DNA of 33,434 bases. Origin: Polymyxa betae A26-41. Lineage: Eukaryota > Protista > Endomyxa: Phytomyxea. A program made the translations under genes and the position numbers. A model generated the notes under the pieces. It saw only the letters and a program-made list of their open reading frames with translations. It made no database searches and was not told the DNA's origin. Shown in pieces: positions 1 to 33,434 of the stretch (position 1 is the first letter of the stretch; each line of letters opens with the position of its first letter). Location: the NCBI GenBank assembly GCA_003693705.1, contig RBZT01000800.1, positions 1-33,434 of the forward strand. Reading direction: 5' to 3'.

Positions 1-972
1 GACTTCCATTGAAGTCCCGTCCCCTATGATCACAGACTTAGTATCGGGTGCCCGCATGTTGACAAGATTCGTGCTGTCTCGTATCATGTGGGCCGTGCAT
101 CCGGAGTCAATCCACCATTTTGTCTTGTCTTTAGACTCCGTTGTAGTTGCCATGAAGGTTGCGTGGAGTTCTGCTTCGGGCGGCCCGTCATCCGATATGA
201 TTTCTCGGCAGTTGCGCGCGATGTGACCTGTTTTCCGACAGCGGTGGCAGGTGATGCCTATGCTCCTTCCGCCTTGTCGCTTTTTGTTGGGATAACGTTT
301 CCCATCTCTCTGGCCGCGAGCGGAGAACGCCGCGTCATTTCCGTCTTTCTCCTTATCGCCCCGGCGGGCGCTTCCTCCCGCACGTTTCTTGTGGTGCGCT
401 TCTTCAATCTCTGCCTCGTCGATCAGGAACTTGATGACTTCGTCCAAGTTTCTCTTGTTGTCGCCTCGTTCACACCGAATTGCCGCTGCTGCGTGCTTGA
501 GATAGTGCGGCAATTTGCTCAACACAAGGACGATAATGTCTTCTTCGTCCATGTCGGCGTTCATGGTCTCGAGCTGCTTCGTCATGCTCTTGACCTTATC
601 CAGAAATGCAGACATTGACGGGAAGTCTTTGAACTGCATGTTATCGAGCTCCCTCCTGCGACGTTGGATGTCGCTTCTCGACTTTCCTTCGTGATAGCTT
701 TTCAACTGGCTCCATGCTTCGCTCGGAGAACGCTTTCCGACGATCTTGATCTTCATGCTATCATCGATACACTTGACGAGCTGAGACATGGCCAGTTTGG
801 ATCTCTTCTTGAAGTCAGCCTGTTCGTTTGGGTTGTCTTCTTCCTTCTCAGTTCCTTCGAGGATGTCCATGACTCCATAGTTGTCGGCCGCTAGCAGGAA
901 CTCCCATGACCACATCAGCCAGTTGTCGTCGGACAGCTTGCTGCTCGTGAACTTCCCAGACGCCGATTGCAT
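1..972 (-). CDS. Ty1/copia retrotransposon gag-pol polyprotein, N-terminal part (gag, CCHC knuckle, aspartic protease); runs off the left edge
   Basis: The minus frame has no stop from 1050 to 1; it is absent from the ORF track because no stop falls in the window. It reads MQSASGKFTSSKLSDDNWLMWSWEFLL (copia gag N-terminus), CHRCRKTGHIARNC (zinc knuckle, 208-249) and WWIDSGCTAHM (copia-type protease, 85-117). An alternative in-frame ATG lies at 1050 within the PBS. Confidence 0.93.
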   Translation of the reverse strand, partial: MQSASGKFTSSKLSDDNWLMWSWEFLLAADNYGVMDILEGTEKEEDNPNEQADFKKRSKLAMSQLVKCIDDSMKIKIVGKRSPSEAWSQLKSYHEGKSRSDIQRRRRELDNMQFKDFPSMSAFLDKVKSMTKQLETMNADMDEEDIIVLVLSKLPHYLKHAAAAIRCERGDNKRNLDEVIKFLIDEAEIEEAHHKKRAGGSARRGDKEKDGNDAAFSARGQRDGKRYPNKKRQGGRSIGITCHRCRKTGHIARNCREIISDDGPPEAELHATFMATTTESKDKTKWWIDSGCTAHMIRDSTNLVNMRAPDTKSVIIGDGTSMEV

Positions 973-1040
973 TGTCGTCAAGGATATCAGTTCCTTGGTT
1001 TCCCGCGCTCGGGTGACGTTGAGTTGAACGTCTTCTGTTG

Positions 1041-1054
1041 CTGGGCCCATAACC
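1041..1054 (-). promoter_or_regulatory. Primer binding site of the copia element (half-tRNA iMet type)
   Basis: The minus strand reads GGTTATGGGCCCAG just upstream of gag, the motif typical of copia/hemivirus elements primed by a cleaved initiator tRNA-Met. Confidence 0.85.
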
Positions 1055-3258: not shown

Positions 3259-4009
3259 TAGGGTCGGGAAAATACTATTTTTTATTTATTTTTCGCTAAA
3301 CCCGAGAGGGAATTACTCTCTGGAAATTGTTGAATTCTACAAAAATCCATCAAATCAAATTACATTACAGATCATTCCTGAATTTTTTCCAAGCGACGGA
3401 ATTAATTCTTCTTCTCTTGTAACCGATGAGAATAAAGTATTCCTAAATATAAAAATTAATTCCCTATCCGAAACCTAACCCTAACGCAATCCGACCACTC
3501 TATCTGCCTTCGAGCCGTGCCCCCACGAAATTCCTTCAAAGTATGGATAGAAACGTCCATGAAGTTCGTGATGTATTCGACAAGGCCATCGAGGTTTTGA
3601 CTGTTTAGGCGAACAGTGCTCGGCGAAATCGTCCATAGTTTCCGATCCTCTGTTCGAAAGTGCTGTTTGCATGATCCTGCGACATCGAATCCTTGCTGAG
3701 TCGTTGCATTTGACTGCTCCTGAAGCAAGACGCGTGGTCATTGCGAGAAATAGCAATCGATAATGAATCAGTCCATCAAACAGGAAGCGAAAACGACGTT
3801 GATTAACCTTTGGGATCTGGCTCCACTCAGACCTACCAGAGCCCGAATAAGAATAGTTTTGAAATGTATTCCTTCCGTATCCATGAATAATTCCTTCTAT
3901 AATACAGCCTTCCCTGAATTATTCCCCCACTGGAAACCTCAAGAATAAATTATTCTCAGGAAGGAATAAGAATTATTGCTGACCAGGAATTATTGTTTCC
4001 CGACCCCTG
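3259..4009. mobile_element. Non-autonomous TIR element (hAT-like MITE), copy 1
   Basis: Termini tagggtcgggaaa / tttcccgacccctg are inverted repeats. Both subterminal regions match 31130-31783 in inverted orientation. Contains aaacctaaccctaa at 3471-3484. No clear TSD. Confidence 0.75.
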
Positions 4010-8939: not shown

Positions 8940-11900
8940 TCTGAGTATCCACCTTTTCTCATGCTCCATCGATACAAAGTCAGACTCGTCTTCAACGGAT
9001 TATGAAAGAGATCCTGTTGATCAAGAGCGACAAATTGATCCAATGGAGGATTCTATGTTAAAATTTGAGCGTGATATTCTGAAAACCATTAACGATCAAG
9101 AGCAATGTTACAAGCCCTACTTTTATACAAGAGAATCAGATGAGAGAGCTTGGAATCGATAGCCTTGCCCACTTGCTGAAGATCAAACAAAAGATTATGC
9201 AATTTGCTGACCAGCGTTTCCGTTCGAGTATCAATAGCAAATGCTTTGATGAACTCCTTGGCATGTATCTTCAAGAGATTTCAACTCGACCAGACCATGA
9301 TTCCGGTGATCCCGTTAAAGTTTATGAGCGACTTCCAGAAAACTGGAAACAAGACAAAGAACCATTCTCAGAGACATTTTCTTATCATTTATGCCCATTG
9401 CCCTGGAGTCATGGTCCTAATGGACATTGCATCTATGTGCTCGAGTTTGAATTCTCTGAACAATTCACAAAGGCTACAGTTTTTAGGAAAAGTCACAGGT
9501 GCTGTCGAGTATCTACCACGGAGCCATACCTTGAATACCTGAAAGCTCAAAAACAATCTCGAAAAATCTTCAAGAAAACGAATCACGAATACAACATTCA
9601 GCAAATCAAACAAGCCTGCGAAGACCCCACCGGTGCAGAATTTTACAAAGTTATCAAACAAATAGAAACTAGGCTCAATAAAAAATTACGACAGAACCAG
9701 ATCCATCACGATCAACCCAACACTGAAACGGAAGAGATTTCGCAAAAGTTTGAATCTATTTTTCGGACAAAACGACGTCAACCCTCGGACACAGAACAAT
9801 ACGACATAAAGAACGACCTAAGGAAAATCGAACAGCAATGGATGGCCGATACAAAAAGAAAGACAAATTCACCATAAGAGAGCTACAACAAGCGATCAAA
9901 AAGACAAACATGAAATCATCTAAAGGACCAGACGGAATCTCAAACATATAAAAATTGTTTGTGAGGATAATGAGTTCAGCGAAATGATGCTAATTAACGC
10001 CATCAATAATCAAACATTCCTCGCAGCAAAATACCCTACAGATCTGAAAAGTGCTCGTATAATTCTACTACCCAAACCAAAACCTGGGGATTACCGACCC
10101 ATCAGCTTACTTCCCAATCTATCTAAATTAGTATAATCCATGATACAGATTCGAATGCGACATACGATAGAATCCAAACTCCCACGTCACCAATTTGGAT
10201 GTAGACCAGGACACTCGACTTCTGCGCTTGCTGCATTATGCTGGAGCAGCAACAAGCAACGACCAATCGGCACATTTTAGTTAAAAAAATGTTGAAATTA
10301 GAAATTCCCGCATATCTGATAAAAATAGTCTACGAGTGGCTAACAGACCGAACATTCACAGTACAGCACAGAGGATATGAGACTACACCACGATCACAGG
10401 AAAACGGCATCCCTCAGGGGTCCAGCTTAAGCGTAATTTTATGGTTAATATTTGTGTACGACATCCCATTAAACCCCAGACTTTCAAATACATATGTAGA
10501 TGATACGATCGGATGGGCGATTGAATCTGAGAAAGAATACGTAGATGGTACATTAAGACACCAACATTGGTAAAATGGTCCGCTGGTGTAATAAGAACAA
10601 AATCAAGATCAATGCAGATCTAACATACGTCATTTTCAATGAATATGATCCCAACGATCAAATACAGTTCCAGGATATGACTATAAAAACGACTGATTCA
10701 ATACGGTATTTAGGTGCTGAAATCACAGCAATAAGGGAGAACAACAACGCGACTTTTCTAATCCAAAAGACTAAAATTGCAAAAAAATCTACAAACGATG
10801 TCAACTGATAAAACGTCTGCGGAAATACAAAATTCCAGAACAAATACTCCACCAATCATGTCATGCTTTTATTAGAGGTATTTTCAATTACTACATACCA
10901 TGGACTGCAGATGAATACGCGATCAAACAAACCATGCGACCTTTAGAAATGGCATCATGAATATATGAGAACATATACAGGATGTATCAAGTCAACACCG
11001 ATCCCTTTATTATACGCAATATGGAGATTCCTTTTCTTCCAAGACAAACTTTTTACCGACAGTGTCCTTACAATGATTAAAGCCGAACCACAAGGAAACC
11101 TACTAGGTGATGATTACCGTAGATGGGATCAGGATGGTTGCAAAGTAGACGGCTGGACACCATTTGGACGCGTTAGATATGCTATTGAAGAAACGAGTGC
11201 AAAAAAATTCGATTCTAGAATCCACGCACAGGAAATTATAGATTCTGAGACCCTTGAGGGACTCAGTAAATGTAAATTCCTCATCTATACACGAGAGACT
11301 GCCATGCAATTACATCAAAAAGGAGATCTCATCCCAGAAAATCCTGATATTGCTATCTGGACAGATGGAAGTCTAATCAGAGAATCTTCTAGAACAGAAC
11401 GCATCATTCTCACAGGCGCTGCTGCAATACTACATATCTCCAACCATGAAGAGTACGACCAGATATCCGAGCACCTAATCAAAATTGCACTAAATCTCAA
11501 AAACGCTGTATCGAGCTACGAAACTAAAATTATAGCCATACAAGCTGGCCTAGATATAGTTCTTCCATTAGAACTTGTAGATAGGAAGATCCATCTATTC
11601 ACAGATTCACTCTCATGCATCCAACAACTAGCCACCCTTCCATATAAATTTAAATTATACTACACATATCTGACCCGGATATACACAGTACTTTATTCGA
11701 ATTAGAAATTCATACGACAATACAGACAGAAAATGCCACATCCAGCTATGAGGCAGAAATCATAGCTCTGCAATCCGGCGTTACTTCATTACTGGAAATG
11801 TATCCCGGGAACAGACACATTCACATATTTACAGATTCTGTATCGTGCTTACAACAACTGGCAGGTCTCCCGTATAAATATAAATTTGTCAACGCAATCG

Positions 11901-12678
11901 TAAAAGATGTTGCTTCAAAATTAGCTGAGCTTAGTGATGATAATGATGTTGAACTACACTTTATTCCTAGTCATACAGACCTGATTGCAGAGAGTGATGC
12001 GATAGACGAACTCGCCAAACAAGCCGCTATAGACGGGGATCTCATAGAGCATGATCCATTGTCTCTTCATACAAACTAGTGTATAAACAATTAGAGAAAC
12101 AGAAGCTACAGAAATACCTGGAAAACAAGGTGAAACCGAGTCGATTTCCAAACTATCCGAAACGACAACTCCTCATAGAAGGCTATACCCGAACAGAAAT
12201 TCAAGACGGAGACACTGAAAATCGGATGTATTGCGATAGCCCTCTATTAAATAGGGTACGAACAGGACATACTCGAGCGCGAGTGCACTTGCAATTTAAA
12301 AATTGAGACCAGTGACCAGTGTCGTCATTGTGAGCGCAAAAGAGAAACCGTTGAGCACCAATTACTGAAATGCCCAAAATTCAAAGATCCACTTAGGAGG
12401 AAAACAGAAAGAAATGCAAACAGCTAAAACCAACAAGTTTTAATGAAGCACTCTACACACATGATCAATTTATGGCCAAATTTCTGGCGAAGGCATATTC
12501 ACAAGGATGTTATATATAGCGAATACGAAGGCTGGGTAACGCCAGTAGGGGAGTATTAGATAAGGATAGGGTACATGGGTTCGAGTCCCTGTTGGATTGG
12601 GCGGGTGCCTATCCTTCCTTATCGAGGCTCTCTTAGGTCCAGCTGATAGGGCCGTTTACGATCAATAATTATTAAAAC
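8940..12678 (+). mobile_element. 5'-truncated, frameshifted LINE retrotransposon ORF2 (RT, RNase H, C-terminal CCHC finger) with 3' UTR
   Basis: Motifs in order: KGPDGISN (~9925), PKPKPGDYRPISLL (~10075-10112), HQFGCRPGHST (~10190), GIPQGSSLS (~10410), YVDD (10493-10504), IRYLG (~10705), RNase H IWTDGS / SSYE / LFTDSLS / HFIPSH..DELAK, RVRTGH, CRHC..ETVEHQLLKC (12320-12373). Many stops and frameshifts. Confidence 0.93.
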
Positions 12679-12751: not shown

Positions 12752-12830
12752 TCCAGACATGCGTTTTGGAGCGAGCGCCGCCTGTTGACCATAAATCAGC
12801 AAACTAGTCGAATCCAATCCAATCCAATCC
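12752..12830 (+). repeat. Dispersed repeat with (ATCCA)n microsatellite; inverted copy at 32705-32767
   Basis: catgcgttttggag..accataaatcagcaaactagtcgaatccaatccaatccaatcc matches the reverse complement of 32705-32767 with one short indel. Confidence 0.8.
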
Positions 12831-13362
12831 TTGCCCAGTCCAAACAGTATGAATAAGTATGATCTTTTGATAAAGCGGTGATAAAGCTCAGAGATTGTGC
12901 AAATTTGCCAATAATTAAGTTCAGCAGGATGCCACAACTAGCTTAATTATGGTAATTATGGCATATGCCATAATTAGTGAGGGCCAGCTCTAACCGAAAG
13001 ATCCCGACAAGACAAATCTTTTTGCGTATTCCAATTTCAGATTTCAATATTGTTGACGGTGTTCATCACGCATCCTTATCTTCCAAAATTGCGCAGATTT
13101 AAAAGCAAAGTGCGCCGTTGCGAATGTCTAGTATATATATATTACACTCAAAGAATGAAAATTGAACCCTGTCGAGTTAGGATGGCGGTTATTAGAGAGG
13201 GGGCTGCGCGCACCTGTTGTACCGGTACTGACCCTCAGGTGTTCAATAAACGTACTGTAGCAGCCTCGAAGAAAAAAGCGTTCAGCTTCAGCCACGTATG
13301 TATGATGCTGTACGCAACCCTCGAGTGTTAAGACTTTACATTCTGATTCAGTGATTCCCACC

Positions 13363-15060
13363 ATGCATGTTCACGTTGTCTTGATGGCGGCGGCCGTACT
13401 GGTCCTGGGGGAGGCGGCCTTTTCGGCCGACCAGGAATCTGATCTCGTTCGTCTCCCGGATGAGATCTTGGAGCAGTGCTGCGTCTCTGCAACAGACCTG
13501 GGACATCTCAGTCTGACATCCCGCCGACTGCTGCATTTGGGCCGTCGCGAGGTCGTACAGGCTCTGTTCGAATCGCTCAGTACCCGTAGAAACCAGATCC
13601 CCCAGCTGGTCCGTATTCTTGCCGCCCGAGTCCGGTACGATCCCGAGACGCTCGATCATGTGAAGAAAGTTCCTCCTCAGCTGGTCATGGGAGTGTATCA
13701 GTTAATTATGTGGAATGAGATATTGAGAAATGAGGAGAAGGCCCAACTACTAAGCTGCATGATTCGAAGACTGGGCCTGACATTGATGGATGATGAGAAG
13801 GAGTTCTTAATTCATGTCAGTGATGGTGATCCGATACCCGGACTTCGTGTCCGTGGCCTGCCGGAACCCGTTCTTGTTGTGATCAAGCAGAAGTATGCAG
13901 AGATCTTGCGTTGGCATCAATAAGGGTTCCTGGACCAAATCCTCTTTCAACTCCTACCGTGTCAAGCCCGTCAAATCAGGCGTTCCAATTGCATGGATCT
14001 CAAAAACGGACTGCGCCCTCTGTATTCGTTTCCGCCCAGTTATATGTTAGGACCTAGCTCCGGAGCCGCCCTCCATATTCTGAAATCGTTTCCCAAACAA
14101 TCTCATCCTCTTTCTGAGTGGCAGAACTTACTGACTCTGCGTCAGCTCGGGATCGTGTTCACTCTCCGTCTATATCTTCAGTATGTCCAGATTCCGCCCG
14201 AATCCATTCCGGATATCGTCCCTCTCCTACATTTAGGCAGCTTCAAGGAAGTATTGAAGCTTTTATGCAGGCTGGTCAAGGCCAGAAGCACCGATGGCTA
14301 TCAGCTGACCCATGATGGACGTACTGGCCTATACCGGGCTCTGCAATGGCTGCGGATCCCGTTTATTCAGCGACAAATCCTGATAAAGCCGGCAATGTTC
14401 ATTAAACACGCCTCCGAAATGTTGGGATCAAACAACTCGGAATTTTTCCGGGGTCTGGAATCGCTTTCGTTCATGCCCGAGATCATCAATAAATCCTATT
14501 CCGCGATTGAGAATTGGCCGCTTCTGAAGATAGCCGCTTCAAAACCGCTTCAAAACAGTTGTTCGATATTGCCCAGATTTTGATGCGGATTCCAAATGCG
14601 TCTTTGTTTGTGAGGGTCCAGGACCGGATTTCCACCATCGATCTCGTTCTTCGAGATTTAATAGGCATGTCTCAGAAGCAGACTATCGACTTCCTATTGT
14701 CCTCGGAATTCATCAAACTGATGCTCTCGAACATCCCAGAACTAAAAGAATCTCTTAAGTCTCTTATCAATGATCGAGATCTGGCACATATCCGTTCTCT
14801 TATTCAACATCCTCTCTATTGGAAGATCCCAGAAGATGTTAAATCTGAAGTCATTCAATATTCAAATATTCATTGTTATCATACCTATATATATTATGCT
14901 CTGCCAAAGAGCCGCTTTAAACAGTTTGACACTGAACCTGAATCGTTTCAAGATTGTTCCAATAAACATGCTTCGTCTCAGCTTTGTGTATTGCTGTGTT
15001 TGCTCTCTCATTTTAGAAGGTTTCTTCTCACAGGCGCGCTCACCTACAGGTTCGCTATCC
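13363..15060 (+). pseudogene. Signal peptide + F-box-like protein, disrupted by an in-frame TAA (13921-13923) and a frameshift near 14520-14580
   Basis: MHVHVVLMAAAVLVLGEAAFSA is followed by LVRLPDEILEQCCVSATDLGHLSLTSRRLLHL (F-box consensus L..LP.EIL....DL..L..(V/T)SR). ORFs 13351-13923 and 13993-14583 share a frame with no evident intron, and 14514-15176 continues in another frame. The 3' end is uncertain. Confidence 0.6.
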
Positions 15061-15098
15061 TATGTAATATTGTTTTGTCACTTGTCAGATTGATGGGA

Positions 15099-15640
15099 AC
15101 TATTGGCTCGATGTCCCACGCCTTTGCCCGATCTTTCCAAAATAGCAGAATACATGATTCAGATCCGGATTCGTGAAGAATTAGAACGAGACTTGCCACG
15201 TCTACAATTCGGATGCAGACCAAGATATTCCACAGCTCACGCGCTAATGAGATTGATGCACTAATCCGGGACAGCTTCAGGAAAGCAGAATCAGTTTGGA
15301 GCAATCCTTTATGATCTCACCAAATCATATGACAAAGAATCAAAAGCAACCCCTAAGCTGCAAATACCTTCATCGACAACACAGCAGGCTGGCCAATAGC
15401 TAGTGATAAAACAGAGGTTGAAAAACAGCTAAGAGAACAGCTTCGCCGAATGATTAACTAGTGTGGCAGAAATAAGATCTGAATTGACACTGAAAGACAC
15501 TTCTAATCTAAGGCAAAAAAACAAAAGCGGAAAATCTCTCACGCTGTACTCGCAAGCTGTCAGAAAAGCGAAAATTAGGACCTAGCCGGGTATGCTCAGA
15601 ACTTGATCGCACCGACGGCGTGGGACATCGAGCCAACAGT
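15099..15640. repeat. 24-bp inverted repeat pair (15099-15122 / 15617-15640) bracketing a LINE RT fragment
   Basis: actattggctcgatgtcccacgcc versus ggcgtgggacatcgagccaacagt (1 mismatch). Confidence 0.75.
15177..15495 (+). mobile_element. LINE reverse transcriptase fragment with internal deletion
   Basis: LPRLQFGCRPRYSTAHALMRLMH*SGTASGKQNQFGAILYDLTKSYDK, then ANTFIDNTAGWPIASDKTEVEKQLREQL; homologous to 10170-10600. Confidence 0.85.
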
Positions 15641-15980
15641 GGCAAATTCCCATTGTTTCAAAACCGCAAATTGACATCGTTTAGGCCTTTGAGATTGCCA
15701 GTATAGTGGCTGGCTGCGCAATTAAACTAAATTATGGCAATCTGTTGAAGGGGAAGCAACTTTAACCGCACAAAGTCGGACAATGACACTTCAAAAAGAT
15801 CTGAGTAGGGCTGATATTACCAATAATGATTAATTCTAAGCTCATGATTTAGCACACAAAAACATATAAACAAGAAAAACGCCTCGGAAGCTCATTTCGT
15901 TAGATAACAGAAATTTGTGATGACCCAGGGAACTACCTCTGGAATGCCACGTTTCTGGGATAAAGTATGCTACTGTATAA

Positions 15981-16520
15981 TACACTTAAAAACGGGTAAA
16001 CAGGCTAAAGGTAGACATGCAGAGAAATGCGAGGGTGTCTACCTCCTCGAAGAATTAGGAGGACGGGCTTGACACTGCGCCGAAACCCTAGGTAGACAGG
16101 CTAAGCGCAGCCTCTCGACAATTAAATATGATGGGCTGCGCATTCTGGTTGCGCAGGAACAGTTATTCGCATCTAGTTATGCTGCATTCCAATCAAGTTT
16201 GAATTCGATTTATCTTCTGTAGTCTGGAGTTAAGGATATCGAGTTTGTATAAAGTGATGAATTTTTCGGAGCTTCCACGATTCTGTTGCCGTATCCTAAG
16301 CAAGTGTGTCTAGCGCAGTCGCTACAATAGTGTCTAGCTTGAGCAGCCCGTCGAACAATTGTCAAAGAGCTGAGCTCAGCCAGTCTACCAAGGGTTTCGG
16401 CCCAATATCAAGCCTGTCTACCTAAGTCTTTAGCCCACCGTTAAAGGGTAGACAAGGGAACTCAACACCCTCGCACTTCTCGGCCTGTCTACATTTTGCC
16501 TGTCTCTACCCTTTTCTGTA
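15981..16520. mobile_element. MITE / foldback element with ~170-bp imperfect TIRs, TA-flanked (Tc1/mariner-like)
   Basis: Left tacac..gggtaaacaggctaaaggtagacatgcagagaaatgcgagggtgt..ccgaaaccctaggtagacaggctaag matches the reverse complement of 16340-16520, which ends ..cttttctgta. Confidence 0.8.
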
Positions 16521-21245: not shown

Positions 21246-24200
21246 ATGGACGACGCCACCGCGGCGCTGCAGTCCTGGACGCCGCTCGAGGAGGAGTTCC
21301 TGCTGTCGCTGGTCTCGGCCCGCGTCCACCCTTGGGTCAAATGGGACCTGGTCGTCGCCATCTTCTTCAAGGAGTTCGGCCCGCTCCGTTTCTACACCGC
21401 CGATATGGTTCGTCGTAAGTTCTATAGTATGAGAGCTCGCTGGCATGATGGCGATGGCGTCCCGGCGCTGATGCATGATATGGACGGCATGATGATGATG
21501 CCGCCGCCGCCGCTGCCCTTCCCACGGGCTTCGGCTTCGGTCAGTCGTATTGCAATAACGAAACGTAAATTCTCATGTCGTACGTAGAGTTGTGGGAATA
21601 CTGCCTCACGGGTTCGGATTCTGGACAAGATTAGCCCGCAGATGCAGTTTAAATGGATTCCGAAGGACGACTTACTGGCAGAGGCTGCGCGGACTCCTAT
21701 TAACCCTAACCCTAATCGCCCATCGCCCATCACAATCCCGGCCTCTCCGCCCCCTGTTCCCGTCGATTTCAATCGTCACGACATGCAATGGGGCGACGAT
21801 GAGCACGAGTATCTGAAGGAGCTGGCCGCCACGTTCGATCAGAAATGGGACGTGCTGGCCCGGCTGATGCGGGACCGATTCCCCGATCGATGTCCGTATA
21901 CCGTGGAGATGCTTCGTCAGAAAATCCAGGACGTGATGGTGCCGCCTAAATCACCGATGGGTCTCTCGGTCGACCTGTTTTACCGCTTTAACCAAGAAAG
22001 TAAGATGCACAATGTCCCGCTGCCGGTAACGGTTCCGGACACGTCATCTTCAGAGTCCGCAGATGTTCCTGTCCAGGTGGATTCTGTGCCAGCTGATGTC
22101 CCTGCTATTAATAACACTATCGGTAATGAACCCGCTCTTCCTGATAATTCCATGGCGGACTTCGGTCCATCTGCTCTTTCCTGTGATGGCTTCAATGAGG
22201 CCTGCGACAATTCCAACGAGGCTGATGTTGACTTTTCTTATGTCGCTGAAGTTTCTGACAACCTTGCTGTTGGTGATGCTGTCGTTTCTGATGACGTTGT
22301 CGTCTGTGAAGACGGTGAGCCCCTTCACATTTCTTCAGCTGATCAACCGATCGCTCCTGAACCAATTCGTCAAAACGACCCTCAAGTTGATGTTTTCGAA
22401 AAAGTTGCTGCAGACGATTCAAACGGCGATTTTATTGAGAATGTTCATGTTCCCGACGAAGATGATGATATCATAGAATATGATCAGGAGAATGAGGCCG
22501 TCGAGCCTTATGCTACCAGCGATGACATGGTCGTCCAAGGGACTGCAAAATCTGATTTCCATGAAGATACCAAATCTAAAGAGTCGAGCAAAGCAGCTGA
22601 CCTTGATGACATCGTGGTGGTTGTGTCGGAATTCACACCTGAAGACAACGATTCTGCACATATTGAAGTTCCTGATTATGCGCAGTTTCAAGCCGATCAT
22701 GATCAAAGATTCGAAATTCCTCAAACCGTTGCTGTCGCAGACCATGAAGAATCCGGGATCGCTAAGAACTCCTGTAATCCCCTCAAAGCAGAGGCTGTCG
22801 AATTTGTCGAAAACTTCCATCTGGAATTGTCAGAAAAAGAAGAGCAGCTAGTTGTGCCACCAACTGAACCAGAATCTGTTGATGGAATTCCGTCACAATT
22901 TCTGCCACAACCTGCTGTGGAAGTCACCCATGAAGTTGCGGTTCAGGTCGAGATTCAAGATGATAGGCTGCCGGAATCTGTCGTCGTCGAACAAGCACAA
23001 CCAGAAATCGTTGACCTGTGCAGCGATGAAAATGTCAAAGAAGGTGAAATTGATGCAGACTCTCATCCTGTCGAGATCGCTTCGGATCGTGATGACTCAC
23101 TCTTCGCAAAAGAAGTTGTCATGGATGTTGATTCTCATCAGGATGACATTCAGCTGTATCCTGAAACAGCCGTCATCACAACAGAGGCTGTTATGAATGT
23201 TCTGGACGACGCTCAGCAGAATCAGGAGACCGCTGTCCCTACCACAGATGTTGCCCTGGTTGCGGATGCCATAAACTTGCATAATGATGTTGAAGTTGCC
23301 ATTGAAGAGGCTGCAGGCGTTCACCTCGATGGCAATCAGCCGAATAATGATGCCGAGATCGCCACTGAAATCGTCGATATGGATATGGATGCTCAGCCCG
23401 ATGATATTCAGCTGGATAATGATGTTAAAGTCACCAACGAGACAACCATGGATGCGGATCTTCATGTGGATGATACTCAGCTGTATAATGATGCTGAAAT
23501 CGCCGCTGACGAGGCTGTCATGGCTGTTCGGGAAGCCCTAAAGTCGGGTAAAGCTGCCAAAGACGCCATTAAAGTAGAGGGCTCGGATGCGGATTGGTTT
23601 CTGAACGACATTCCGTTAAATCATGACGCTCAAATCATCTCTAACGGTGTCATACATGTTGCCAAACAAGTCATTGCTGCCAATGTTGTAGCTGATGCTC
23701 CAGCTCCGGCTTCTTCGATGGCCTTCGACAGGAAAATCAAGCCTGAGCCCATTTCTATGCCTGGTATTTTACAATTGCTTATCCTTTTATTTTATTTTAT
23801 TCTTTGCTGTCTTTTCTCTTCAGATTTCTGAAACACTTTTATTGTTCGATTTTCTTATTTTGCGCCCGTTTTACCAGGTTTATTCTACAGTGATGTTGTT
23901 ATTTATCTTTCTATGGATTTTTTCCGTCATTGATGTTGAATCTGAACCCTCTTTTGTTCGATTCTGTTGTTTCTGCTTTTGCTATACATAACATTTTTCT
24001 CTTCTTGATAAATAATCGTTTCTGTCATTAGTCAATCAGAGCTGCGGATGTTAAAGTTTTTGGTTTGATACACTTTTTTCTGTTAGATCAGAGCTACTTT
24101 TCTAGTTTTATTCTCTTTGCGTTCATTCCTTTTTTCCTACAGTTTCATTGATTTGCTGTGCTAAAAGTTGATGAATTTCCTTTTTTTTCATGATTAAATG

Positions 24201-26470
24201 ACATTGTCAGTTTCTGCGTTTTCAACTGTTTTTTGTTTTCATCATATTCTGATTAATTTTTTTTCAGCCGAGGTCATCGTTCCGGACCTTCAGTCACCAA
24301 TCTCCGTCTTCAGCCATGTCCAAGAATCTGTAACTATCACCAAGTCTGTTGCAGGAGCGATTCTAACTACTGGCGCCGACGACACCGAATCAGACGAAGA
24401 CGTTGCCATCCCGAAGCTGACCAATTCGCACATCTGTCATTTCAACGCTTTCGACGATATCGACTCGCTACACGGGCCCGGATACGAATCACCACAAGAT
24501 CTCGCCAACCTCCACTACCAGCTTCTGGCGCCGGATATTAGTTCGGTAGAATCGCCGTCCCGACCGCCGCCCACTCCGAAACAACACGACTCAGATTTCC
24601 TCAAGAACAATCTGGTCGGTCGTGCTATCCGGAAACTGGTCGAAGGGCGCGTCGCCGAGACCGAAATCCACATGGGGAGCGACGCCATCTCGCAGCAGCC
24701 TGAGGCCGCGGAGGTCGTTACGGACGCTCTCAACCCTGTGACGGACTCCGAACCCATAAACGTCCCTGCTGAAGCGATGGTGGTCTCGCCTGCGATCGAT
24801 TTCGATCTCGATGAAAACGACTTCGACATGGACGAGGTGTCGGTGCCGGCCGAGCCCGTCCCGCCACCCAAGGTTACAACGAAACCGCTCACCGCTGCCA
24901 TTTCCAAACGCCGCGGCCGCCCGCCGGCTCCGGTGGGCGCCCTCCCTAGGAAGCGCGGTCGACCCCGTAAGAACGCTCCCAAGGCTGTGGAAGCCAGCGC
25001 TATCAGGAACATGACCGTCGACAAGATCGATCCTGTGCTTGGTTACATTACCAACAGTGGTATCGCTTTGGCTGGTAACATTGCCAAGTCTGACACGAGG
25101 GAACCTCTTCCTGGTAACATTACCGAGTCTGAGAATATCCTGGGCAAGTCCGTCGCTGTTAATGGGAATGTTTTATGCGAATCCCTGGCTGCTAATATCC
25201 CATCTGATGATCGACGTCACGAGCCGTTGGCGGATCAATCTCACCAGACCTGCGAGCTGGAAACGCTTCTTCATAGCAGCATTGTGGTGAGAGCGTTGTC
25301 AAAAGCCGAAGACTTAATCGCAAAGGAAAATGTCAAGCCCAGAGATGATGCTTCGAGTGAGGCTTTGGCGGTCTCTATCGACGCTTCGAAGCTATCAAAG
25401 TCTACAGAAACGCCGATTAATCCCGCTCTCGAGATTTCTTTGCCGACACTATCGAAAGGATCCTCAACGCAGCCGATTATCGAAATCCCACCACAATCCA
25501 TGTCGAAAAATCCTTCGGCTCACTCGATTGTCGACATTCTGCCGCCGTCAAAATCGCAGGAAGCTTTGTGTGTTGAAGGTCCTGGTCCGACAGAATCAAA
25601 AGAACCGTCGGTACAGCCGATTGTCGAAGTTCCGGCACCTTCCAAATTGAAAGCGATCTCGACCAAGCTCGCTGTTGAGAGGCGTTCGCTGTCTAGGGAT
25701 GTTGTTGCGAATTCCACCAAGGAGAAGTTAATTGGCAGTCGTATGAAGGGCGTGAAGAGTGGTAAACAGGCAACAAAGCCGCTCGTGACGCGGTCGGTGA
25801 GCAGCCGTACAAGAAGCTCGAAGAGAGCAGTGTCGCCAATCAGATTGCTGCCAGTACGGAAAAGTAATGACCATTCTGTTTGCTTGAGAACTTTCGTGTT
25901 CTGACTTTGTTTAGGTCGAAGAGTATGTCAGAATGATTTCGCACCACGTAAATCAGGTACTGCTGTTTCTGCTTTTCCTGCTATTTTCAAATTTTTTCAT
26001 CATTTTTAAAAATGTTTTTTTTGTCTTAATTATCGTGTCTGCATTTTTTTGTTGATCTTTCGAAATGACTTTTGGCACTGATGTTGGGCTGTACCTCTAT
26101 ATGTTCGTATTTTTTCGAGTTTTTCAGTTTAGATCTGTTCCTGTTCACTATTCTCGACTAAGCGAAGTTTCTCGCAGATTTTCAAAACGAGTCGTCGGTG
26201 AACACACAGCAGAGCGTTTGCGGTGACGATGTCGGTCCAGACTCAAGTGCGAACATCTCGTGTGATACTATCATGTCTGAAGCGCTTGCAGTCGCCGTAC
26301 AGGACCCGGATCCACCGGGGACTGCTCTGGATACCGAAACTTTATCTGCGAGCACTGAACCGTTGCTGCCTCCAAGATCGACATCTAATAATATGATGGA
26401 GAGCAGCAGTATAGAAATACCAGGACAGTCGAGATGGCTGCTTCCCTCTAAGTCATGTCTGTTACAATAA
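21246..26470 (+). CDS. Myb/SANT-like x2, AT-hook x2, acidic low-complexity protein with C-terminal CaaX (CLLQ); ~1448 aa; exons 21246-21539, 21642-23763, 24268-25863, 25915-25956, 26178-26470
   Basis: Myb-like WTPLEEEFLLSLV..KWDLVV..YTADMVRRKF and WGDDEHEYLKEL..KWDVLARLM..YTVEMLRQK; AT-hooks KRRGRPP and RKRGRPRK (24906-24971). All four GT..AG introns are phase-compatible (0,1,1,1) and the exons sum to 4347 nt = 1449 codons. Confidence 0.75.
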
Positions 26471-27449
26471 TATTCTCTTTTAAATCTCTCTTATTTATGG
26501 TTTTTATCCCAATACACTGTCTTTAGCTTAGTACCGTCGATTCTTCGGTCAACTGCACCAAAAGGCGCTTTGTTTTCCCACAATCAAAGCGATGATTTCA
26601 AGTAAATTTTGAATGAAAATATGGGTGTTTCAAACCAGAATTTTCTTTGAGCAGATTCCTTTGTCACACAGCATGCAAATTTATCAGCGAGTCGCTGCTT
26701 TCGTACAGACGAACCTAACCTGTGCCGATTGGACTTGATTTGCAAAAGGTGAGACGGAAGGCGATTTTGATAATCTTTGACTCTCATTTGGATTGTGTTG
26801 GGTTAGGTTTTATTCTAAGATTCGATGCATTCAGGCAGCACTCTCCTCACAACTAACGAAATTCGCAACCAAGGAACATTGTTGGTCTAACAGGCATTTG
26901 CGATAAAAAAGTTTTTACGGGATCAGAAATAAAACAGGGAATTTTTTAGTACCGCTATTTCTTTGCTGAATCAGTCTTTCCAGAAACTATTTTTACATGC
27001 ATTGAGATTGAATTTCAAGGGGCGCAATAAAAAACTGCGCAAATATTTTCGAGTTCCTGCAAACCCAAATAAACGCAAATATCTTTCCCGTGATTTTCCG
27101 CAAAAAGACCGCAACCGCTTTTGCTAAAGAATCCGATCTAATAACAGCTGTCTGTCATAATTATTCATCCAATGGCAATGAATAGAGATCGAACAAAGTG
27201 GTCTTAATGATCAATTGGCATCCCAGAATTAGATGTTGTTGGCCGTTTGGCCCACGTCGACCTGCCAGAATTGAAGTTTTGCGCTGAGCGACGGATGCTG
27301 CGCCACGGCATTGCGACCCCACTGATATGAGCGTGTCAACCCCCCCCCCCCCGACATACAGTCTCACCCAGTAGCAGGGCCAGCTCAGTTGATCCCAACC
27401 ACCCAGTCGATCCAACCCCAACTAACGCCCCCAGCGCCCCTTCACCCCT

Positions 27450-30332
27450 ATGCCACCACCCGGCTGTCGGCCCTGGGCGGCCGCCGAAGAACAGTACCTG
27501 GCCGAGCTCGTGGGCCAGCATGGCCGCCAATGGGGCCACTGGGAACTGATCGCCCGCCTCATGCTGCAGCGATTCGGGTCGGCGATTCGCCTCTATACCT
27601 CCCATCTCGTCCAGCAGAAATGGGCGGGCATGTCGCGGCGTCGGAAAGCGCCCCCGGTGGCCAGTAAGTCCCAGCAGCAGCCGCAGCAGCAGCAGCAGGC
27701 GACCCCTGGCTGGTACTGCTATTATGACGGCGATACCGGCTGCTATTACTATGATGATGAGACCGGTGTGCGATACTATCTGGACCCGTCGCAGCTGGTC
27801 CAGTACGACCAGCACCCGGTCGAGTATTACCCGACGCAGTTCGGGGAAGACGCGAGTGTCCCGTTTGTCACCGGGGTGGAGGCCGAGCGACGCGGTCTGC
27901 AATGGCGCTGGACGGGCGAAGAGACGGCGTATTTGCGCGGGCTGATCGCGTCGCATAACCCTACCGACTGGAATATCGTGGCCGGAGCGATGCGACAGCG
28001 ATTCGGGCGCCGATTTCGCGATTATACGATGAACTGCGTGGAGACCAAATGGCATCGGATTAAGGGCAAACAGACAGATCAGCAGGTCGGTAGTGGTGAG
28101 GTCGCTGTCATTGATCTCAGTGGCGACCCGCCGGTCGTACTGGAGCGCACGGAACCCGTTCATCGGCCCACTGTATCCCGTGTAGAGAGTTTCGTCACAA
28201 ATATGGCCGATTTTCGTATTACAGATGAAGGTGAGCTACATCATGTTAATTAATTTATTCACCTGATTTTTTGTCTTTTATATTTATTTACCAGAATTTA
28301 TTGCATTATTATCTTGTGTAAGATTCCTCATCATTTTCGCTTCTTATGTTATTACGGCTTGTTGTGATCTAAATTTTTTGTACATTTTGCTTTCGAACAA
28401 TTTCTGGTCTTTCTATCGCTAGCAATACGATTGACAATCTCTGTTATTCTTTCGTCACCGCATTCCATTTTTTTACTTAATTTTTCTCCTTCCGTTTGCT
28501 CTCACTCCAACAGTTTCCCCTAAACCCAAACCCTAATCGTTCTCCTATTTGTTTTGCGACCTGTCACACATTCGCTCAATTCTTACCACTTTTTTATCAG
28601 GAGCCTCTCAGCCCCATCACGAGGCCGTCTTCTCAGAGGTCGTACCGGCCCCGGCCACCGTCAACGACATGGCCGCCAGCCACGACGCCGACTCCGACGA
28701 AACCGCACCGCTGGATAGTTCGGGTCGTACTGGCCCGCCCTCGAACCTGCCTACGGACGTCGATCCAGCTCATAGCGTGATGGCTGCGTCGCCGGACGTT
28801 TCCAGACTGCGTCAGGTGGTGATGGACGTGCCCGCCCCCGACCATGAAGAGAGCGCGTTCGATAAAGTCGCGTTGGGGCCGCGAACGGCGTCGGTTTCGT
28901 CGCAGCGCGCCATGTCTGACGGGGTCTCGGACTCCGCCGCCATCGAGTTCGCCCGTCTGTCTCAACTGGCGGCTCGGCAAATCGTCAAAACGGATCGCGA
29001 ACGTAAATTGCGACGTCAATCTGAATGGTTCCTCTCAGCCGGTACCATTCGACGTCGTCGCAACTTTTCTGCGCCGATTCCCGTTACTGCTGCCGCTGTC
29101 GCGGATATTCCTTCGAATATTGATTATGAAGCACCACCAGATACGGATATCAACATCAGCACGCATTCCGCGGCGGACATATCTATGATCGGGGCGGATC
29201 TGAGCCTGGCGTCGCAGGCCTCCGCCTCCGAATCGAACTGTGTCGTTCCTATCGATCATGCTCTGACGGACCCCGCCACGGACCTCCCGGATGCCGCTCC
29301 GGCTTTCTCGTCGGTTGCTGCTGACCAGCAGGACACTGCTATATGCGATTTGTCACCTTCAAAGGATGCGGAACCATCGGAGCCTGTTACACCATCGTAT
29401 TCACCTTCGAAGCTTCCTGATCAGCTACAGACAACTGCATCGGTTCAAGTGATCGTCTCCGAAGATCCGCCGCCATCTGATCATGAAGATCTGAATTCGG
29501 CGGCGTCCGCCATCGTTACCAGATCTGCAACGCCTCAGATTCGAAGAACGACGAGATCGTCGAGTTCCGCCCTCGGTCGAAAGCAACGATCCTCGGGGCC
29601 TTTGAAGCGCTCTAAGCGACTGCCGCTGGACCGCCCGACACCGCCGCTACGAAGAAGTCGACGATCGGCAAGTTCGGCCACGGAATCCAGTGTTACTGCG
29701 ACCCCAAACGAGATCGAATCGCGACGAAACCGCCCAAGTTTCGATAAAACTTTTCAACGTGATTCTGATATTTCCAAATGTAAGTTTTTTCCGACTTTTT
29801 TTCAAGTTTTTGCAAACTTGATGTCAATTTGCTTCAATGTTTTCTGTGGCAGTTATTCAGTCCATCTTGGATTCAATTGTTGTTAGATCGGCGGACCGAG
29901 ATGGCCTTGACCAGTACGACCGGGTCTGGGCCGAGTCCGGATCCCGGGCCAGTGTTCGATGGAGGTAGACTATCCCATTTCCGTCTATCTCGATCGCCAT
30001 TCTCATTGATTCTATCTAAATAGATTCTCCCGCTGATGACCAAATTCCTGCAAGATCTCTTTCGGAGCTCAATACAACACCAATAGGTAATGTTACGGCC
30101 TCTGCTTTTGAGCTTTTCGCTCTTTCTAGTTTCAAAGAAATTATCCGTTTGATTCTGTTTTTGGTCTGTTGAAATCAGAGGGATGTTGGGTATCATTGAT
30201 CCAGGTCAATATTGATATAATTCTGTTACAGACTGGCGTGTGGATAACGTTCGAAGAAGGAATGAGCCCGAGCCGACCCCCGTCCTGGAATCGAAATCAT
30301 CCTGGAGATCACGAGCATGTTTAATTCAATAG
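27450..30332 (+). CDS. Myb/SANT-like x2 protein with polyQ, OCRE-like Tyr repeat, Ser/Arg-rich tail and C-terminal CaaX (CLIQ); ~712 aa; exons 27450-28230, 28601-29779, 29887-29964, 30232-30332
   Basis: Myb-like WAAAEEQYLAELV..HWELIARLM..YTSHLVQQKW and WTGEETAYLRGLI..DWNIVAGAM..YTMNCVETKW. Introns GTGAGC..TCAG, GTAAGT..TTAG and GTAGAC..ACAG are all phase 1, and the exons sum to 2139 nt = 713 codons. The last exon reads DWRVDNVRRRNEPEPTPVLESKSSWRSRACLIQ*. Confidence 0.8.
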
Positions 30333-31129: not shown

Positions 31130-31783
31130 CAGGGGTCGGGAGAAAATAATTCCTGGTCAGGAATTCTTCTTATTCACTCCTGAGATAGATTATTTTTCGA
31201 GTTTCCCAATGGGGGAATTATTCAGGGAAGGTTGTTCTATAAAAGGAATTATTCATGGATACGGAAGAATAATTTTCAAACTATTCCTAATCGGATTGTG
31301 TTAGGTCGGAGTGGAAATAAAGAGAGAAATGAGAAGCGGAAGGAGATAGATGTTTGGTTCTCGGCAAAGTGTGGTGCTTTAAAGAGTCAAAGACACAGAA
31401 AGATGAATGGAATGAGACCTTCCAAGTATATTAGAATATTAATAGGAGAAAGAGTCACAAGAGCAACATCAAATTGGTAGAGGCTACAATTTGAGTGTCG
31501 CGTCCGCGGATAGACAGTGCATGACGACCATGTTAGGAGGCCGCGACCAGTCTTGAGCGACTACGGCGTGAGACCGGTCGCATACCGCCACGACCTTGTG
31601 CCAAGTTGTTGGGGCACTACTCGAAGGCAGATAAAGTGGCCGGATTCCGTTAGGGTTAGGGTTGGGGATTGAGAATATTATTTTTAGTAATTCAGTCGCA
31701 CGGAAAAAGGTCAGGAAATATTCCCTCTCGGTTTTAGCAAGGAATTTAATCACGAATACGGAGTAATATTTTCCCGAACCCTG
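31130..31783. mobile_element. Non-autonomous TIR element (hAT-like MITE), copy 2, inverted relative to 3259-4009
   Basis: Termini CAGGGGTCGGGA..TTCCCGAACCCTG; subterminal ~160 bp at each end match copy 1; ttagggttagggtt at 31650-31663. Confidence 0.78.
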
Positions 31784-32379
31784 CCCCAAACCCTAAGTAC
31801 CCTTGGCCGAAACTGACACAAAAATATTTTTACACTGCAAAATTTTCATTTCAACGATTCTGACACAGATCTTGATGATATAACACAACATCTAACTTGT
31901 AATTTCCTATCACTTTGTTTATTGTCTTTTCTGGATATTGACAGCTCAATTATGTAAGATAGAGCAGGAATTGCAGCATTTGACTCTTCCCGGCTCGATT
32001 ATAGAATTACGTAAATCCAGCTAGACAGACGGGAGAATTTGCAGCGTTCGGCATTATTTCAAGAACAGAATCGAGATTTTGCTGACTGCATTTCAGAATA
32101 CTTATTATCGCTGCTCAAAACGTGCGATATCCGATGCGGATTTGCGACAAAATCAGCAAACACAGCATACAATCATGATTTGATAGGAACATGATTGGGA
32201 TTGTAGCATCGATATTAAAGCGTATTTGGATTGCAGTCTGTCTAACAGTGACGCACACTTGCTCCGGAATCTCATTTCATTTATGAGTCCCGACCACGGA
32301 CTAACATTGAGTGTTCGTTTATATTGTCATTGCAGAGCTCTCGTACTCGTGCTAAAACCCTAACCGCGGTTCACGTACG

Positions 32380-32691: not shown

Positions 32692-33434
32692 CCTGGACGA
32701 CTATGGATTGGATTGGATTGGATTCGACTAGTTCGCTGATTTATGGTCTCCAAAACGCATGGCTGGAAAATGGGACGACTATTAGGTAGACGCTAATCGA
32801 GCTCGTCATCGCTACAGAAATTAGAATCTTCTGTATTGCTGGCGGCACCATCGATTGATTTCTAGACAGTTTGCGACCTAACAATTGCTCGTGGGTTTTT
32901 CCGCATTCCATAGAAACAAACCGGAAATCTCATCTACAAAACAGCTTCTATTTTGCGGTCAGTCCCATCAAATAGAAGCGAAAAATGGAGAGTTTCGCTA
33001 GCGGTGTTTTCACGGCAATTGGAATATTTTGCGGATATCTCACCCTTCCCACTATGGGTCCCCGACCTGACGACCCAGTCTATTGGCGACCTTGCTGAAA
33101 TATGCGTAAACACAAGTAAAAAAAGTGCGTTTCCAAAATTTGTTGCGATCTGAGTTAGTTTGCGAGTTTTGCGGAAGGTTTGCGGTTTGCTGTTAGGTTC
33201 CTATCTCTTTGTCTGGCAGTGACAGTGGACCATGTCCAGAACTGTCGCTAACCGACAATTCTCTCGCGAGCCTCATGGCCCAAGTTCGTCAAATGTGAGA
33301 ATCGATTCTCCGAACCCACATTCGTGCAAACGAAATCAGACATCGAAATCGTACAAGTTGAATTCAAGCAATGGTGTATTGATTATTTATTGCATTAATA
33401 AAGCATCATCTCACTAGCAATAAATTATATTCAA

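Follow-up and report, generated by a model that had tools for sequence, protein, structure and literature searches.

Chromatin is linked to the nuclear envelope through lamins, through LEM or other transmembrane proteins, and through adaptor complexes. In the TERB1-TERB2-MAJIN complex of mammals and in Bqt4 of fission yeast, the inner nuclear membrane is connected with a DNA-binding module, of the Myb type or another. B-type lamins and prelamin A reach the inner nuclear membrane, and make contact with chromatin, by combining basic signals of the nuclear localization signal (NLS) type with a farnesylated C-terminal CaaX box (PMC2288919, PMC2173957). Kugelkern, a non-lamin and largely unstructured nuclear protein, binds the inner nuclear membrane directly by means of an NLS and a farnesylated CaaX box (PMC2947476). 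Lamins and Kugelkern are known prenylated nuclear proteins, and in the literature we searched no prenylated nuclear protein with DNA-binding domains of its own is described. An earlier note on a 33,434-nt stretch of the Polymyxa betae A26-41 genome (contig RBZT01000800.1, the whole of which is referred to here as the window) proposed such a combination for two tandem genes, whose predicted proteins begin with two Myb/SANT-like domains and end in a CaaX box; it knew of no described family with both features, and none is described in the literature we searched. Our preferred reading of this locus, to which we assign a probability of roughly 0.4, is that it encodes two farnesylated, chromatin- or DNA-binding double-Myb paralogues with canonical CaaX ends, the first of which also has AT-hooks.

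Splicing at GT-AG sites yields two head-to-tail genes on the plus strand, namely gene 1 (21246-26470) and gene 2 (27450-30332), whose exons are listed in Table 1. Frame continuity was checked with a script that joins the exons, whereas the homology and fold searches described below were run exon by exon. Once joined, the exons of each gene form a single open frame, of 1452 codons ending in CLLQ-stop in gene 1, and of 733 codons ending in CLIQ-stop in gene 2. The frame and splice-site check thus reproduced the parallel layout that the earlier note had described, i.e., a Myb pair, a tail, a micro-exon and a last exon, with C-L-(L/I)-Q-stop at the end of both genes. The note had predicted seven introns; the joins are indeed in phase through GT-AG sites, but eight introns are possible if both optional small exons of gene 2 (78 and 63 nt) are included. 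Skipping one or both of these leaves the last exon in frame. A second in-frame acceptor is possible for gene 1 exon 2, at position 21642.

To score coding potential, we used codon-usage log-odds in a cross-trained manner; that is, the model derived from one gene was applied to the other. The long exons score between +87 and +211 bits in the frame of the model, and the last exon of gene 1 scores +10 bits in frame versus -20 and -29 bits off frame; for the micro-exon and the small exons the scores are uninformative. The GC content of the exons is 0.43-0.67 versus 0.30-0.39 in the introns, except for intron 1 of gene 1 (0.46). From the tail onward, all introns of both genes are in phase 1. In addition, the tail exon of each gene ends in K and the following exon opens with xRR, while an Asp codon split by the intron begins the last exon, with an aromatic residue next to it (DF in gene 1, DW in gene 2).

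These features bear on whether the gene models are wrong, i.e., whether the CaaX exons, or the tail exons as a whole, belong to separate transcripts. The Myb proteins would then lack a CaaX box, and any CaaX proteins would be Myb-less and of low complexity. The introns that follow gene 1 exon 2 (504 nt) and gene 2 exon 1 (370 nt) are long enough to hide promoters, in-frame ATG codons occur at 24198 and at about 28669, the donor at 23763/4 is weak, and neither the micro-exons nor the last exon of gene 2 have a coding signal of their own. Nevertheless, the same order of Myb pair, tail, small exon or exons and CaaX exon, on one strand and with phase-1 introns, is found in both paralogues; both junction motifs, K followed by xRR and D followed by an aromatic residue, recur as well; and in GC content the modelled introns resemble intergenic DNA. 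We therefore regard separate transcripts as distinctly unlikely, and consider that the gene models probably end as described. As a separate observation, retention of intron 2 of either gene would end the open frames (at 23764-23831 in gene 1 and 29780-29886 in gene 2, both on the plus strand) in hydrophobic peptides derived from T-rich intron sequence, one of them tail-anchor-like and the other terminating in N-C-C. These hydrophobic ends are most likely an artefact of composition, with an alternative isoform as a possibility.

The frequency of CaaX-like endings was assessed over all stop contexts in the window, defined as stop codons with four sense codons before them, counted in all six frames (n=2312). 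The general pattern C-[AVILM]-[AVILM]-[QSMAC] is found at 4 of the 2312 contexts, and CL[LI]Q at 2, which are precisely the ends of gene 1 and gene 2. If the background rate is taken as about 0.09% per stop, both genes would end in such a box with a joint probability of about 5e-4, before the same tetrapeptide is required. From the donors of the tail exons, splicing to any AG can reach 12-28 distinct stops per gene; no other end among these is a CaaX box, and of the 23-26 ends reachable in gene 1 it is CLLQ that gives the longest open reading frame (ORF). A third CaaX-like end, CIIQ on the minus strand near 15970-15984, is situated in DNA of non-coding appearance, and we discounted it as the background match to be expected.

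The last exons of the two genes can be aligned solely over S-[KR]-[SA]-C-L-[LI]-Q. The flanking DNA has no alignable similarity, and the codon for the first Leu after the Cys differs between the genes (CTG versus TTA); recent gene conversion was therefore rejected as the source of the shared ending. Because the DNA is dissimilar, the Leu codons differ and the paralogues are just ~30% identical, the comparison points to a constraint on the CaaX box at the level of the amino acids; the coincidence of the two endings is not a product of chance. Selection had been suggested by the earlier note on the grounds of the shared ending, and both the joint probability and the codon difference speak for it, albeit from two paralogues alone. 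What the selection would act upon could, in principle, be something other than prenylation, e.g., a C-terminal degron or a docking motif, and it is true that the three residues preceding the Cys are covered by the conservation as well. Yet all four positions of the box fit the CaaX rule, both tetrapeptides are prenylated in yeast reporters, and no other C-terminal signal is known to us in which a Cys at position -4 is required together with two aliphatic residues. A non-prenyl motif is thus very unlikely.

Given the exon models, CLLQ and CLIQ stand directly before the stops and satisfy each element of the CaaX rule, namely a Cys at -4, aliphatic residues at a1 and a2, and a residue at X that is accepted by farnesyltransferase (FTase). 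Both tetrapeptides are in the prenylation-positive yeast set of PMC9231725, whose S1 File provides training sets assembled from genetic screens in yeast (Ras61 and Ydj1); CLIQ is also cleavage-positive, i.e., it follows the canonical pathway. For yeast FTase, Q at X is a positive pattern, and I, L, M or V at a2 is favourable (PMC10320760; CASQ and CKQQ are discussed there as X = Q motifs). The view that CaaX boxes with X = Q are FTase substrates, on which the earlier note relied, holds for these exact tetrapeptides in yeast. That is, CLLQ and CLIQ are competent in yeast reporters, from which we infer prenylation in this organism; if the gene models end as described, the proteins are quite probably farnesylated.

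A farnesyl group might nonetheless serve another end than anchoring these proteins next to chromatin. It could act as a protein-protein targeting handle of the kind known from CENP-E, CENP-F and Spindly; alternatively, it might keep a Myb factor on endoplasmic reticulum or cytoplasmic membranes, away from DNA. The X = Q class is that of CENP-E, CENP-F, Ydj1 and LKB1, the lipid would be a single one with no clear polybasic stretch beside the Cys, and the candidate NLSs are basic clusters, with no classical strong NLS demonstrated. On the other hand, the aliphatic a1 and a2 residues (L-L and L-I) place both boxes in the canonical membrane-type class that is cleaved and methylated, and not in the shunted class of Ydj1, in line with the cleavage-positive status of CLIQ; moreover, a nuclear location is favoured by the Myb domains, the AT-hooks and the basic clusters. 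On balance, we find a handle-like or cytoplasmic role unlikely.

To characterize the N-terminal domains, we aligned six Myb-like domains, four from the two genes of the window and two from a metagenome fragment, P0007, which is introduced below. W, E, L, L, F and Y positions are invariant in all six, as the pattern given in the earlier note implied. The Pfam Myb_DNA-binding model recognizes domain 1 of gene 2 with 31.8 bits, versus a cut-off of 24.4, and is matched by four of the six family domains at E <= 1; gene 1 exon 2 yields weak Pfam Myb/SANT_DAMP1 matches. When the six-domain profile was compared with the PDB, it retrieved c-Myb, B-Myb, Trichomonas MYB21 and SNAPC4, with a best E of 7e-9. 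Relative to canonical Myb repeats, a family-specific insert of ~8 residues, R-F-x4-5-Y-T, separates helix 2 from helix 3. A single-sequence AlphaFold prediction for gene 2 exon 1 was unusable, with a predicted local distance difference test (pLDDT) score of 39; AlphaFold2 (AF2) supplied with a 24-row alignment, whose bias is considered below, produced a three-helix model with a pLDDT of 82. The best Foldseek matches of this model are the R2 and R1 repeats of c-Myb, the Myb domains of TRF2 and TRF1, CDC5L, SNAPC4 and the SANT domain of SMRT, with template-modelling (TM) scores of 0.65-0.75. Pfam, the PDB profile search and the AF2/Foldseek model therefore agree on double Myb/SANT N-termini, with Myb, TRF and SANT domains as the top matches. 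Three of the four domains in the window are basic, with isoelectric points (pI) of 9.8-10.8, and the fourth, Myb2 of gene 1, is acidic. No further Myb-like domains were found elsewhere in the window.

The first domains of the two genes match each other best (41.6 bits) and have a 3-residue insert in common, which indicates that the two-domain layout is older than the gene duplication. The ~30% identity between the genes refers to their best-conserved domains, and their status as paralogues is supported. When gene 2 exon 1 was compared by phmmer with 1.84 billion representatives, eight weak matches were obtained, of which seven are generic Myb repeats or unrelated. The eighth is P0007, a 109-residue N-terminal fragment from soil run SRR5690242 with the same two-domain pattern, including R-F-x-x-R-x-Y-[ST]. 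Scans of metagenome contigs for relatives gave no match, nor did a word-index search with the Myb2 region of gene 1, while the same search with P0007 returned P0007 alone. No orthologues were found in the collections searched, in which P0007 is the sole relative. The proteins are, in short, a divergent and sparsely populated branch of the Myb/SANT superfamily.

The segments between the Myb-like domains have features of their own. In gene 2, this segment resembles a degenerate WW domain (Pfam WW E 0.33); five of the eight top PDB phmmer matches are WW domains, namely those of KIBRA, Itch, Salvador and PRPF40A, with E values of 0.13-2. In gene 1, the corresponding linker includes PPPPLP, a motif of the WW-ligand type. 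These sequences are hints that the paralogues might pair with each other.

The tails of both proteins are of low complexity and have no Pfam domain. In gene 1 they are preceded, after Myb-like domain 2 in exon 2, by ~600 acidic low-complexity residues with D-D-I/T-Q-L repeats. No alignment between the two tails was obtained by BLASTP (E >= 0.7), consistent with the earlier description of them as otherwise unalignable. They had also been described as disordered; low-complexity composition and the absence of domains favour this, but a crude charge-hydropathy test was ambiguous, so that disorder is a prediction from composition and domain content. A transmembrane segment was not detected in either tail, the maximal 19-residue hydropathy being at most 1.35. 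Two AT-hooks are found in gene 1, and none in gene 2. In exon 2 of gene 2, basic NLS-like clusters are located near 29002, 29050, 29605 and 29650; clusters of this kind are seen in both genes and are candidate NLSs.

Several considerations weigh against the conclusion that these are farnesylated, chromatin- or DNA-binding double-Myb paralogues. The exon models are predictions from the genomic sequence. The last exon of gene 2 has a codon score of just +2.3 bits, with a GC content of 0.50 versus 0.37 in the intron before it, and is supported mainly by the C-terminal motif that it has in common with gene 1. Three of the four domains in the window fall below the Pfam cut-off and were assigned through the family alignment, and the alignment used for AF2 was padded with canonical Myb repeats, which biased the fold and renders its confirmation partly circular. 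Judging from its pI of 4.9, Myb2 of gene 1 appears more like a histone-binding SANT domain than a DNA-binding one. The conservation of the CaaX box is that of a single pair of paralogues, and the specificity of FTase in this organism is assumed. Lastly, a single farnesyl group without a polybasic or palmitoyl second signal confers weak membrane affinity.

If the preferred reading is correct, i.e., if both proteins are farnesylated double-Myb paralogues, the standard mechanism is the most likely one. FTase would lipidate the Cys of the CaaX box, -aaX would be cleaved, and the new C-terminus would be methylated. The resulting polypeptide would have a hydrophobic anchor at its C-terminal end and would hold DNA or nucleosomes at the other; if nuclear import takes place, the inner nuclear membrane would bear this anchor on its nucleoplasmic face. 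The idea of a tether at this membrane derives from the analogy with lamins and Kugelkern, in which an NLS is combined with a farnesylated CaaX box, and nuclear import, membrane association and the tethering role are each predictions. Provided that the proteins are farnesylated, we give somewhat less than even odds to the lipid being an anchor that tethers them to the inner nuclear membrane. A more elaborate proposal, which we consider speculative and rather doubtful, is that this lineage-restricted pair forms a direct tether between DNA and the inner nuclear membrane, in which the Myb pair, along with the AT-hooks of gene 1, would bind DNA, possibly at the telomere-like TTAGGG dimers that the window has in excess, the prenylated C-terminus would be embedded in the membrane, and the paralogues may be paired via the WW-like stretch of gene 2 and PPPPLP of gene 1.

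Were such a tether to exist, it would constitute a route to peripheral chromatin anchoring that is independent of lamins and LEM proteins, and would illustrate how lineages without canonical lamins might solve this problem. A Myb-to-lipid tether in one polypeptide would also be a minimal and easily testable module for the peripheral positioning of chromatin. The more modest reading, that of a farnesylated Myb/SANT protein, would by itself extend the candidate substrates of FTase by a new class.

The window is eukaryotic in character, with GT-AG introns that have T-rich 3' ends, GC-rich exons and GC-poor introns, and it includes two tRNA genes. Among its ORFs outside both genes and the mobile elements, none has an informative Pfam domain. 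The mobile elements, i.e., a copia gag ORF, LINE-like reverse transcriptase (RT) and RNase H ORFs (LINE, long interspersed nuclear element) and a dispersed repeat of ~540 bp, are abundant enough to raise the question of whether the Myb-like genes are themselves transposon-associated, akin to the second ORF of PIF/Harbinger elements, rather than host chromatin proteins. However, Pfam detects no DDE transposase in any ORF of at least 75 residues outside both genes, with no transposase domain in a scan of 81 ORFs or in the other ORF sets scanned, no terminal repeats bracket either gene, and ~30% identity is that expected of old paralogues and not of transposon copies. A Harbinger or other transposon origin was rejected in view of the missing transposase, and we deem it highly improbable.

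Other observations in the window concern its repeats and remaining ORFs. The only database relative of the copia gag is 46% identical and lies on a 1.7-kb Joint Genome Institute (JGI) metagenome contig. The three consecutive ORFs at 13306-15173, with a weak F-box match, may be a spliced F-box gene. Telomere-like (CCCTAA)2 dimers, with at most one mismatch, are seen six times versus 0.06 expected in the window. One of them lies in the coding linker of gene 1, where it encodes N-P-N-P-N, and another in intron 1 of gene 2; both contain AACCCTAATCG. Such dimers could be binding sites for Myb-type factors. The two copies of the ~540-bp repeat bracket both genes, which is probably a coincidence.

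Table 1. Coordinates of gene 1, gene 2 and other features of the window.
Feature	Position	Strand	Description
Gene 1 exon 1	21246..21539	+	Start codon; Myb-like domain 1 (21264-21443, pI 9.8); PPPPLP in linker (21500-21520); codon score +87 bits (gene 2-trained)
Gene 1 exon 2	21630..23763	+	Myb-like domain 2 (21777-21944, acidic, pI 4.9); codon score +211 bits
Gene 1 exon 3	24268..25863	+	S/T/P-rich tail with 2 AT-hooks; without Pfam domain; codon score +165 bits
Gene 1 AT-hooks (2, in exon 3)	24906-24968 (starts 24906 and 24948)	+	R-G-R-P cores with basic flanks
Gene 1 micro-exon	25915..25956	+	42 nt, phase 1-1; canonical splice sites, open frame; coding score uninformative
Gene 1 last exon	26178..26470	+	CLLQ codons 26456-26467, stop 26468-26470; codon score +10 bits in frame
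Gene 2 exon 1	27450..28230	+	Myb-like domain 1 (27462-27644), poly-Q, WW-like stretch (27687-27824), Myb-like domain 2 (27897-28079)
Gene 2 exon 2	28601..29779	+	S/T/P-rich tail; basic NLS-like clusters; codon score +204 bits (gene 1-trained)
Gene 2 small exon	29887..29964	+	78 nt, phase 1-1, GC 0.67; optional in frame
Gene 2 small exon	30024..30086	+	63 nt, phase 1-1; optional in frame; weakly supported
Gene 2 last exon	30232..30332	+	CLIQ codons 30318-30329, stop 30330-30332
Ty1/copia gag ORF, intact	1-1053	-	Retrotran_gag_2 E 1e-21, zinc knuckle, start of Pol beta-barrel domain; runs off window start
Decayed LINE-like element	10205-12076	+	RT fragment (RVT_1 E 3e-6) and RNase H (E 3e-6) in separate ORFs
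Three consecutive ORFs	13306-15173	+	Weak N-terminal F-box/F-box-like match, E 0.04-0.1
Telomere-like dimers	3473-3484, 21704-21715, 28525-28536, 31650-31667 (minus strand), 31785-31796		
Dispersed repeat, ~540 bp	3468-4009 and 31130-31666	inverted orientation	27 kb apart, 84-86% identity; each copy ends in a telomere-like dimer
44-nt inverted repeat pair	12787-12830 and 32705-32748		98% complementary, (GGATT)n-like units, 20 kb apart

Compared with the systems outlined at the outset, the proteins encoded by gene 1 and gene 2 belong neither to the lamins nor to the LEM or telobox TRF proteins. In terms of function, their nearest analogues would be prenylated nuclear proteins (B-type lamins, Kugelkern) and envelope tethers that contain a Myb domain (TERB1-TERB2-MAJIN). 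With B-type lamins and prelamin A they would have in common a nuclear location, basic NLS-type signals and a C-terminal farnesylated CaaX box, prenylation being a prediction in the present case. Lamins, however, consist of a coiled-coil rod and an Ig-fold tail, and no exon of either gene has a Pfam match to the filament or lamin tail (LTD) domains; furthermore, the lamin CaaX boxes end in M, whereas those of gene 1 and gene 2 end in Q. Drosophila Kugelkern, as well as Kurzkern, is alike in architecture alone: there is no sequence similarity, and Kugelkern is without Myb/SANT domains or AT-hooks. In contrast to LEM and other transmembrane tethers of the envelope, the two proteins have no LEM match by Pfam and no transmembrane-grade stretch. 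The meiotic telomere tethers differ in that their transmembrane segments reside on a partner subunit and no prenyl group is involved; TERB1 has one Myb domain, at its C-terminus, and no homology was detected.

As to the N-terminal domains, the repeats of c-Myb, the telobox Myb domains of TRF1 and TRF2 and the SANT domains of NCoR and SMRT have the same three-helix fold with spaced aromatic residues, and provide the best matches in sequence and structure. TRF and other telobox proteins, though, have a single C-terminal Myb domain, whereas here the domains are paired and N-terminal, and their third helices lack the telobox signature (of the V-D-L-K-D-K-W-R type).

With regard to the C-terminus, CENP-E, CENP-F, Spindly, Ydj1 and LKB1 are CxxQ substrates of FTase. 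Their a1 and a2 residues are mostly non-aliphatic, in contrast to those of the two proteins described here, and their lipid is employed for protein targeting or chaperone function rather than for stable anchoring. Arabidopsis APETALA1 differs in that its DNA-binding domain is of the MADS and not the Myb type, it has no long tail, and no role as an envelope tether has been proposed for it; as a farnesylated transcription factor, it is nonetheless a precedent for a DNA-binding protein with a functional CaaX box.

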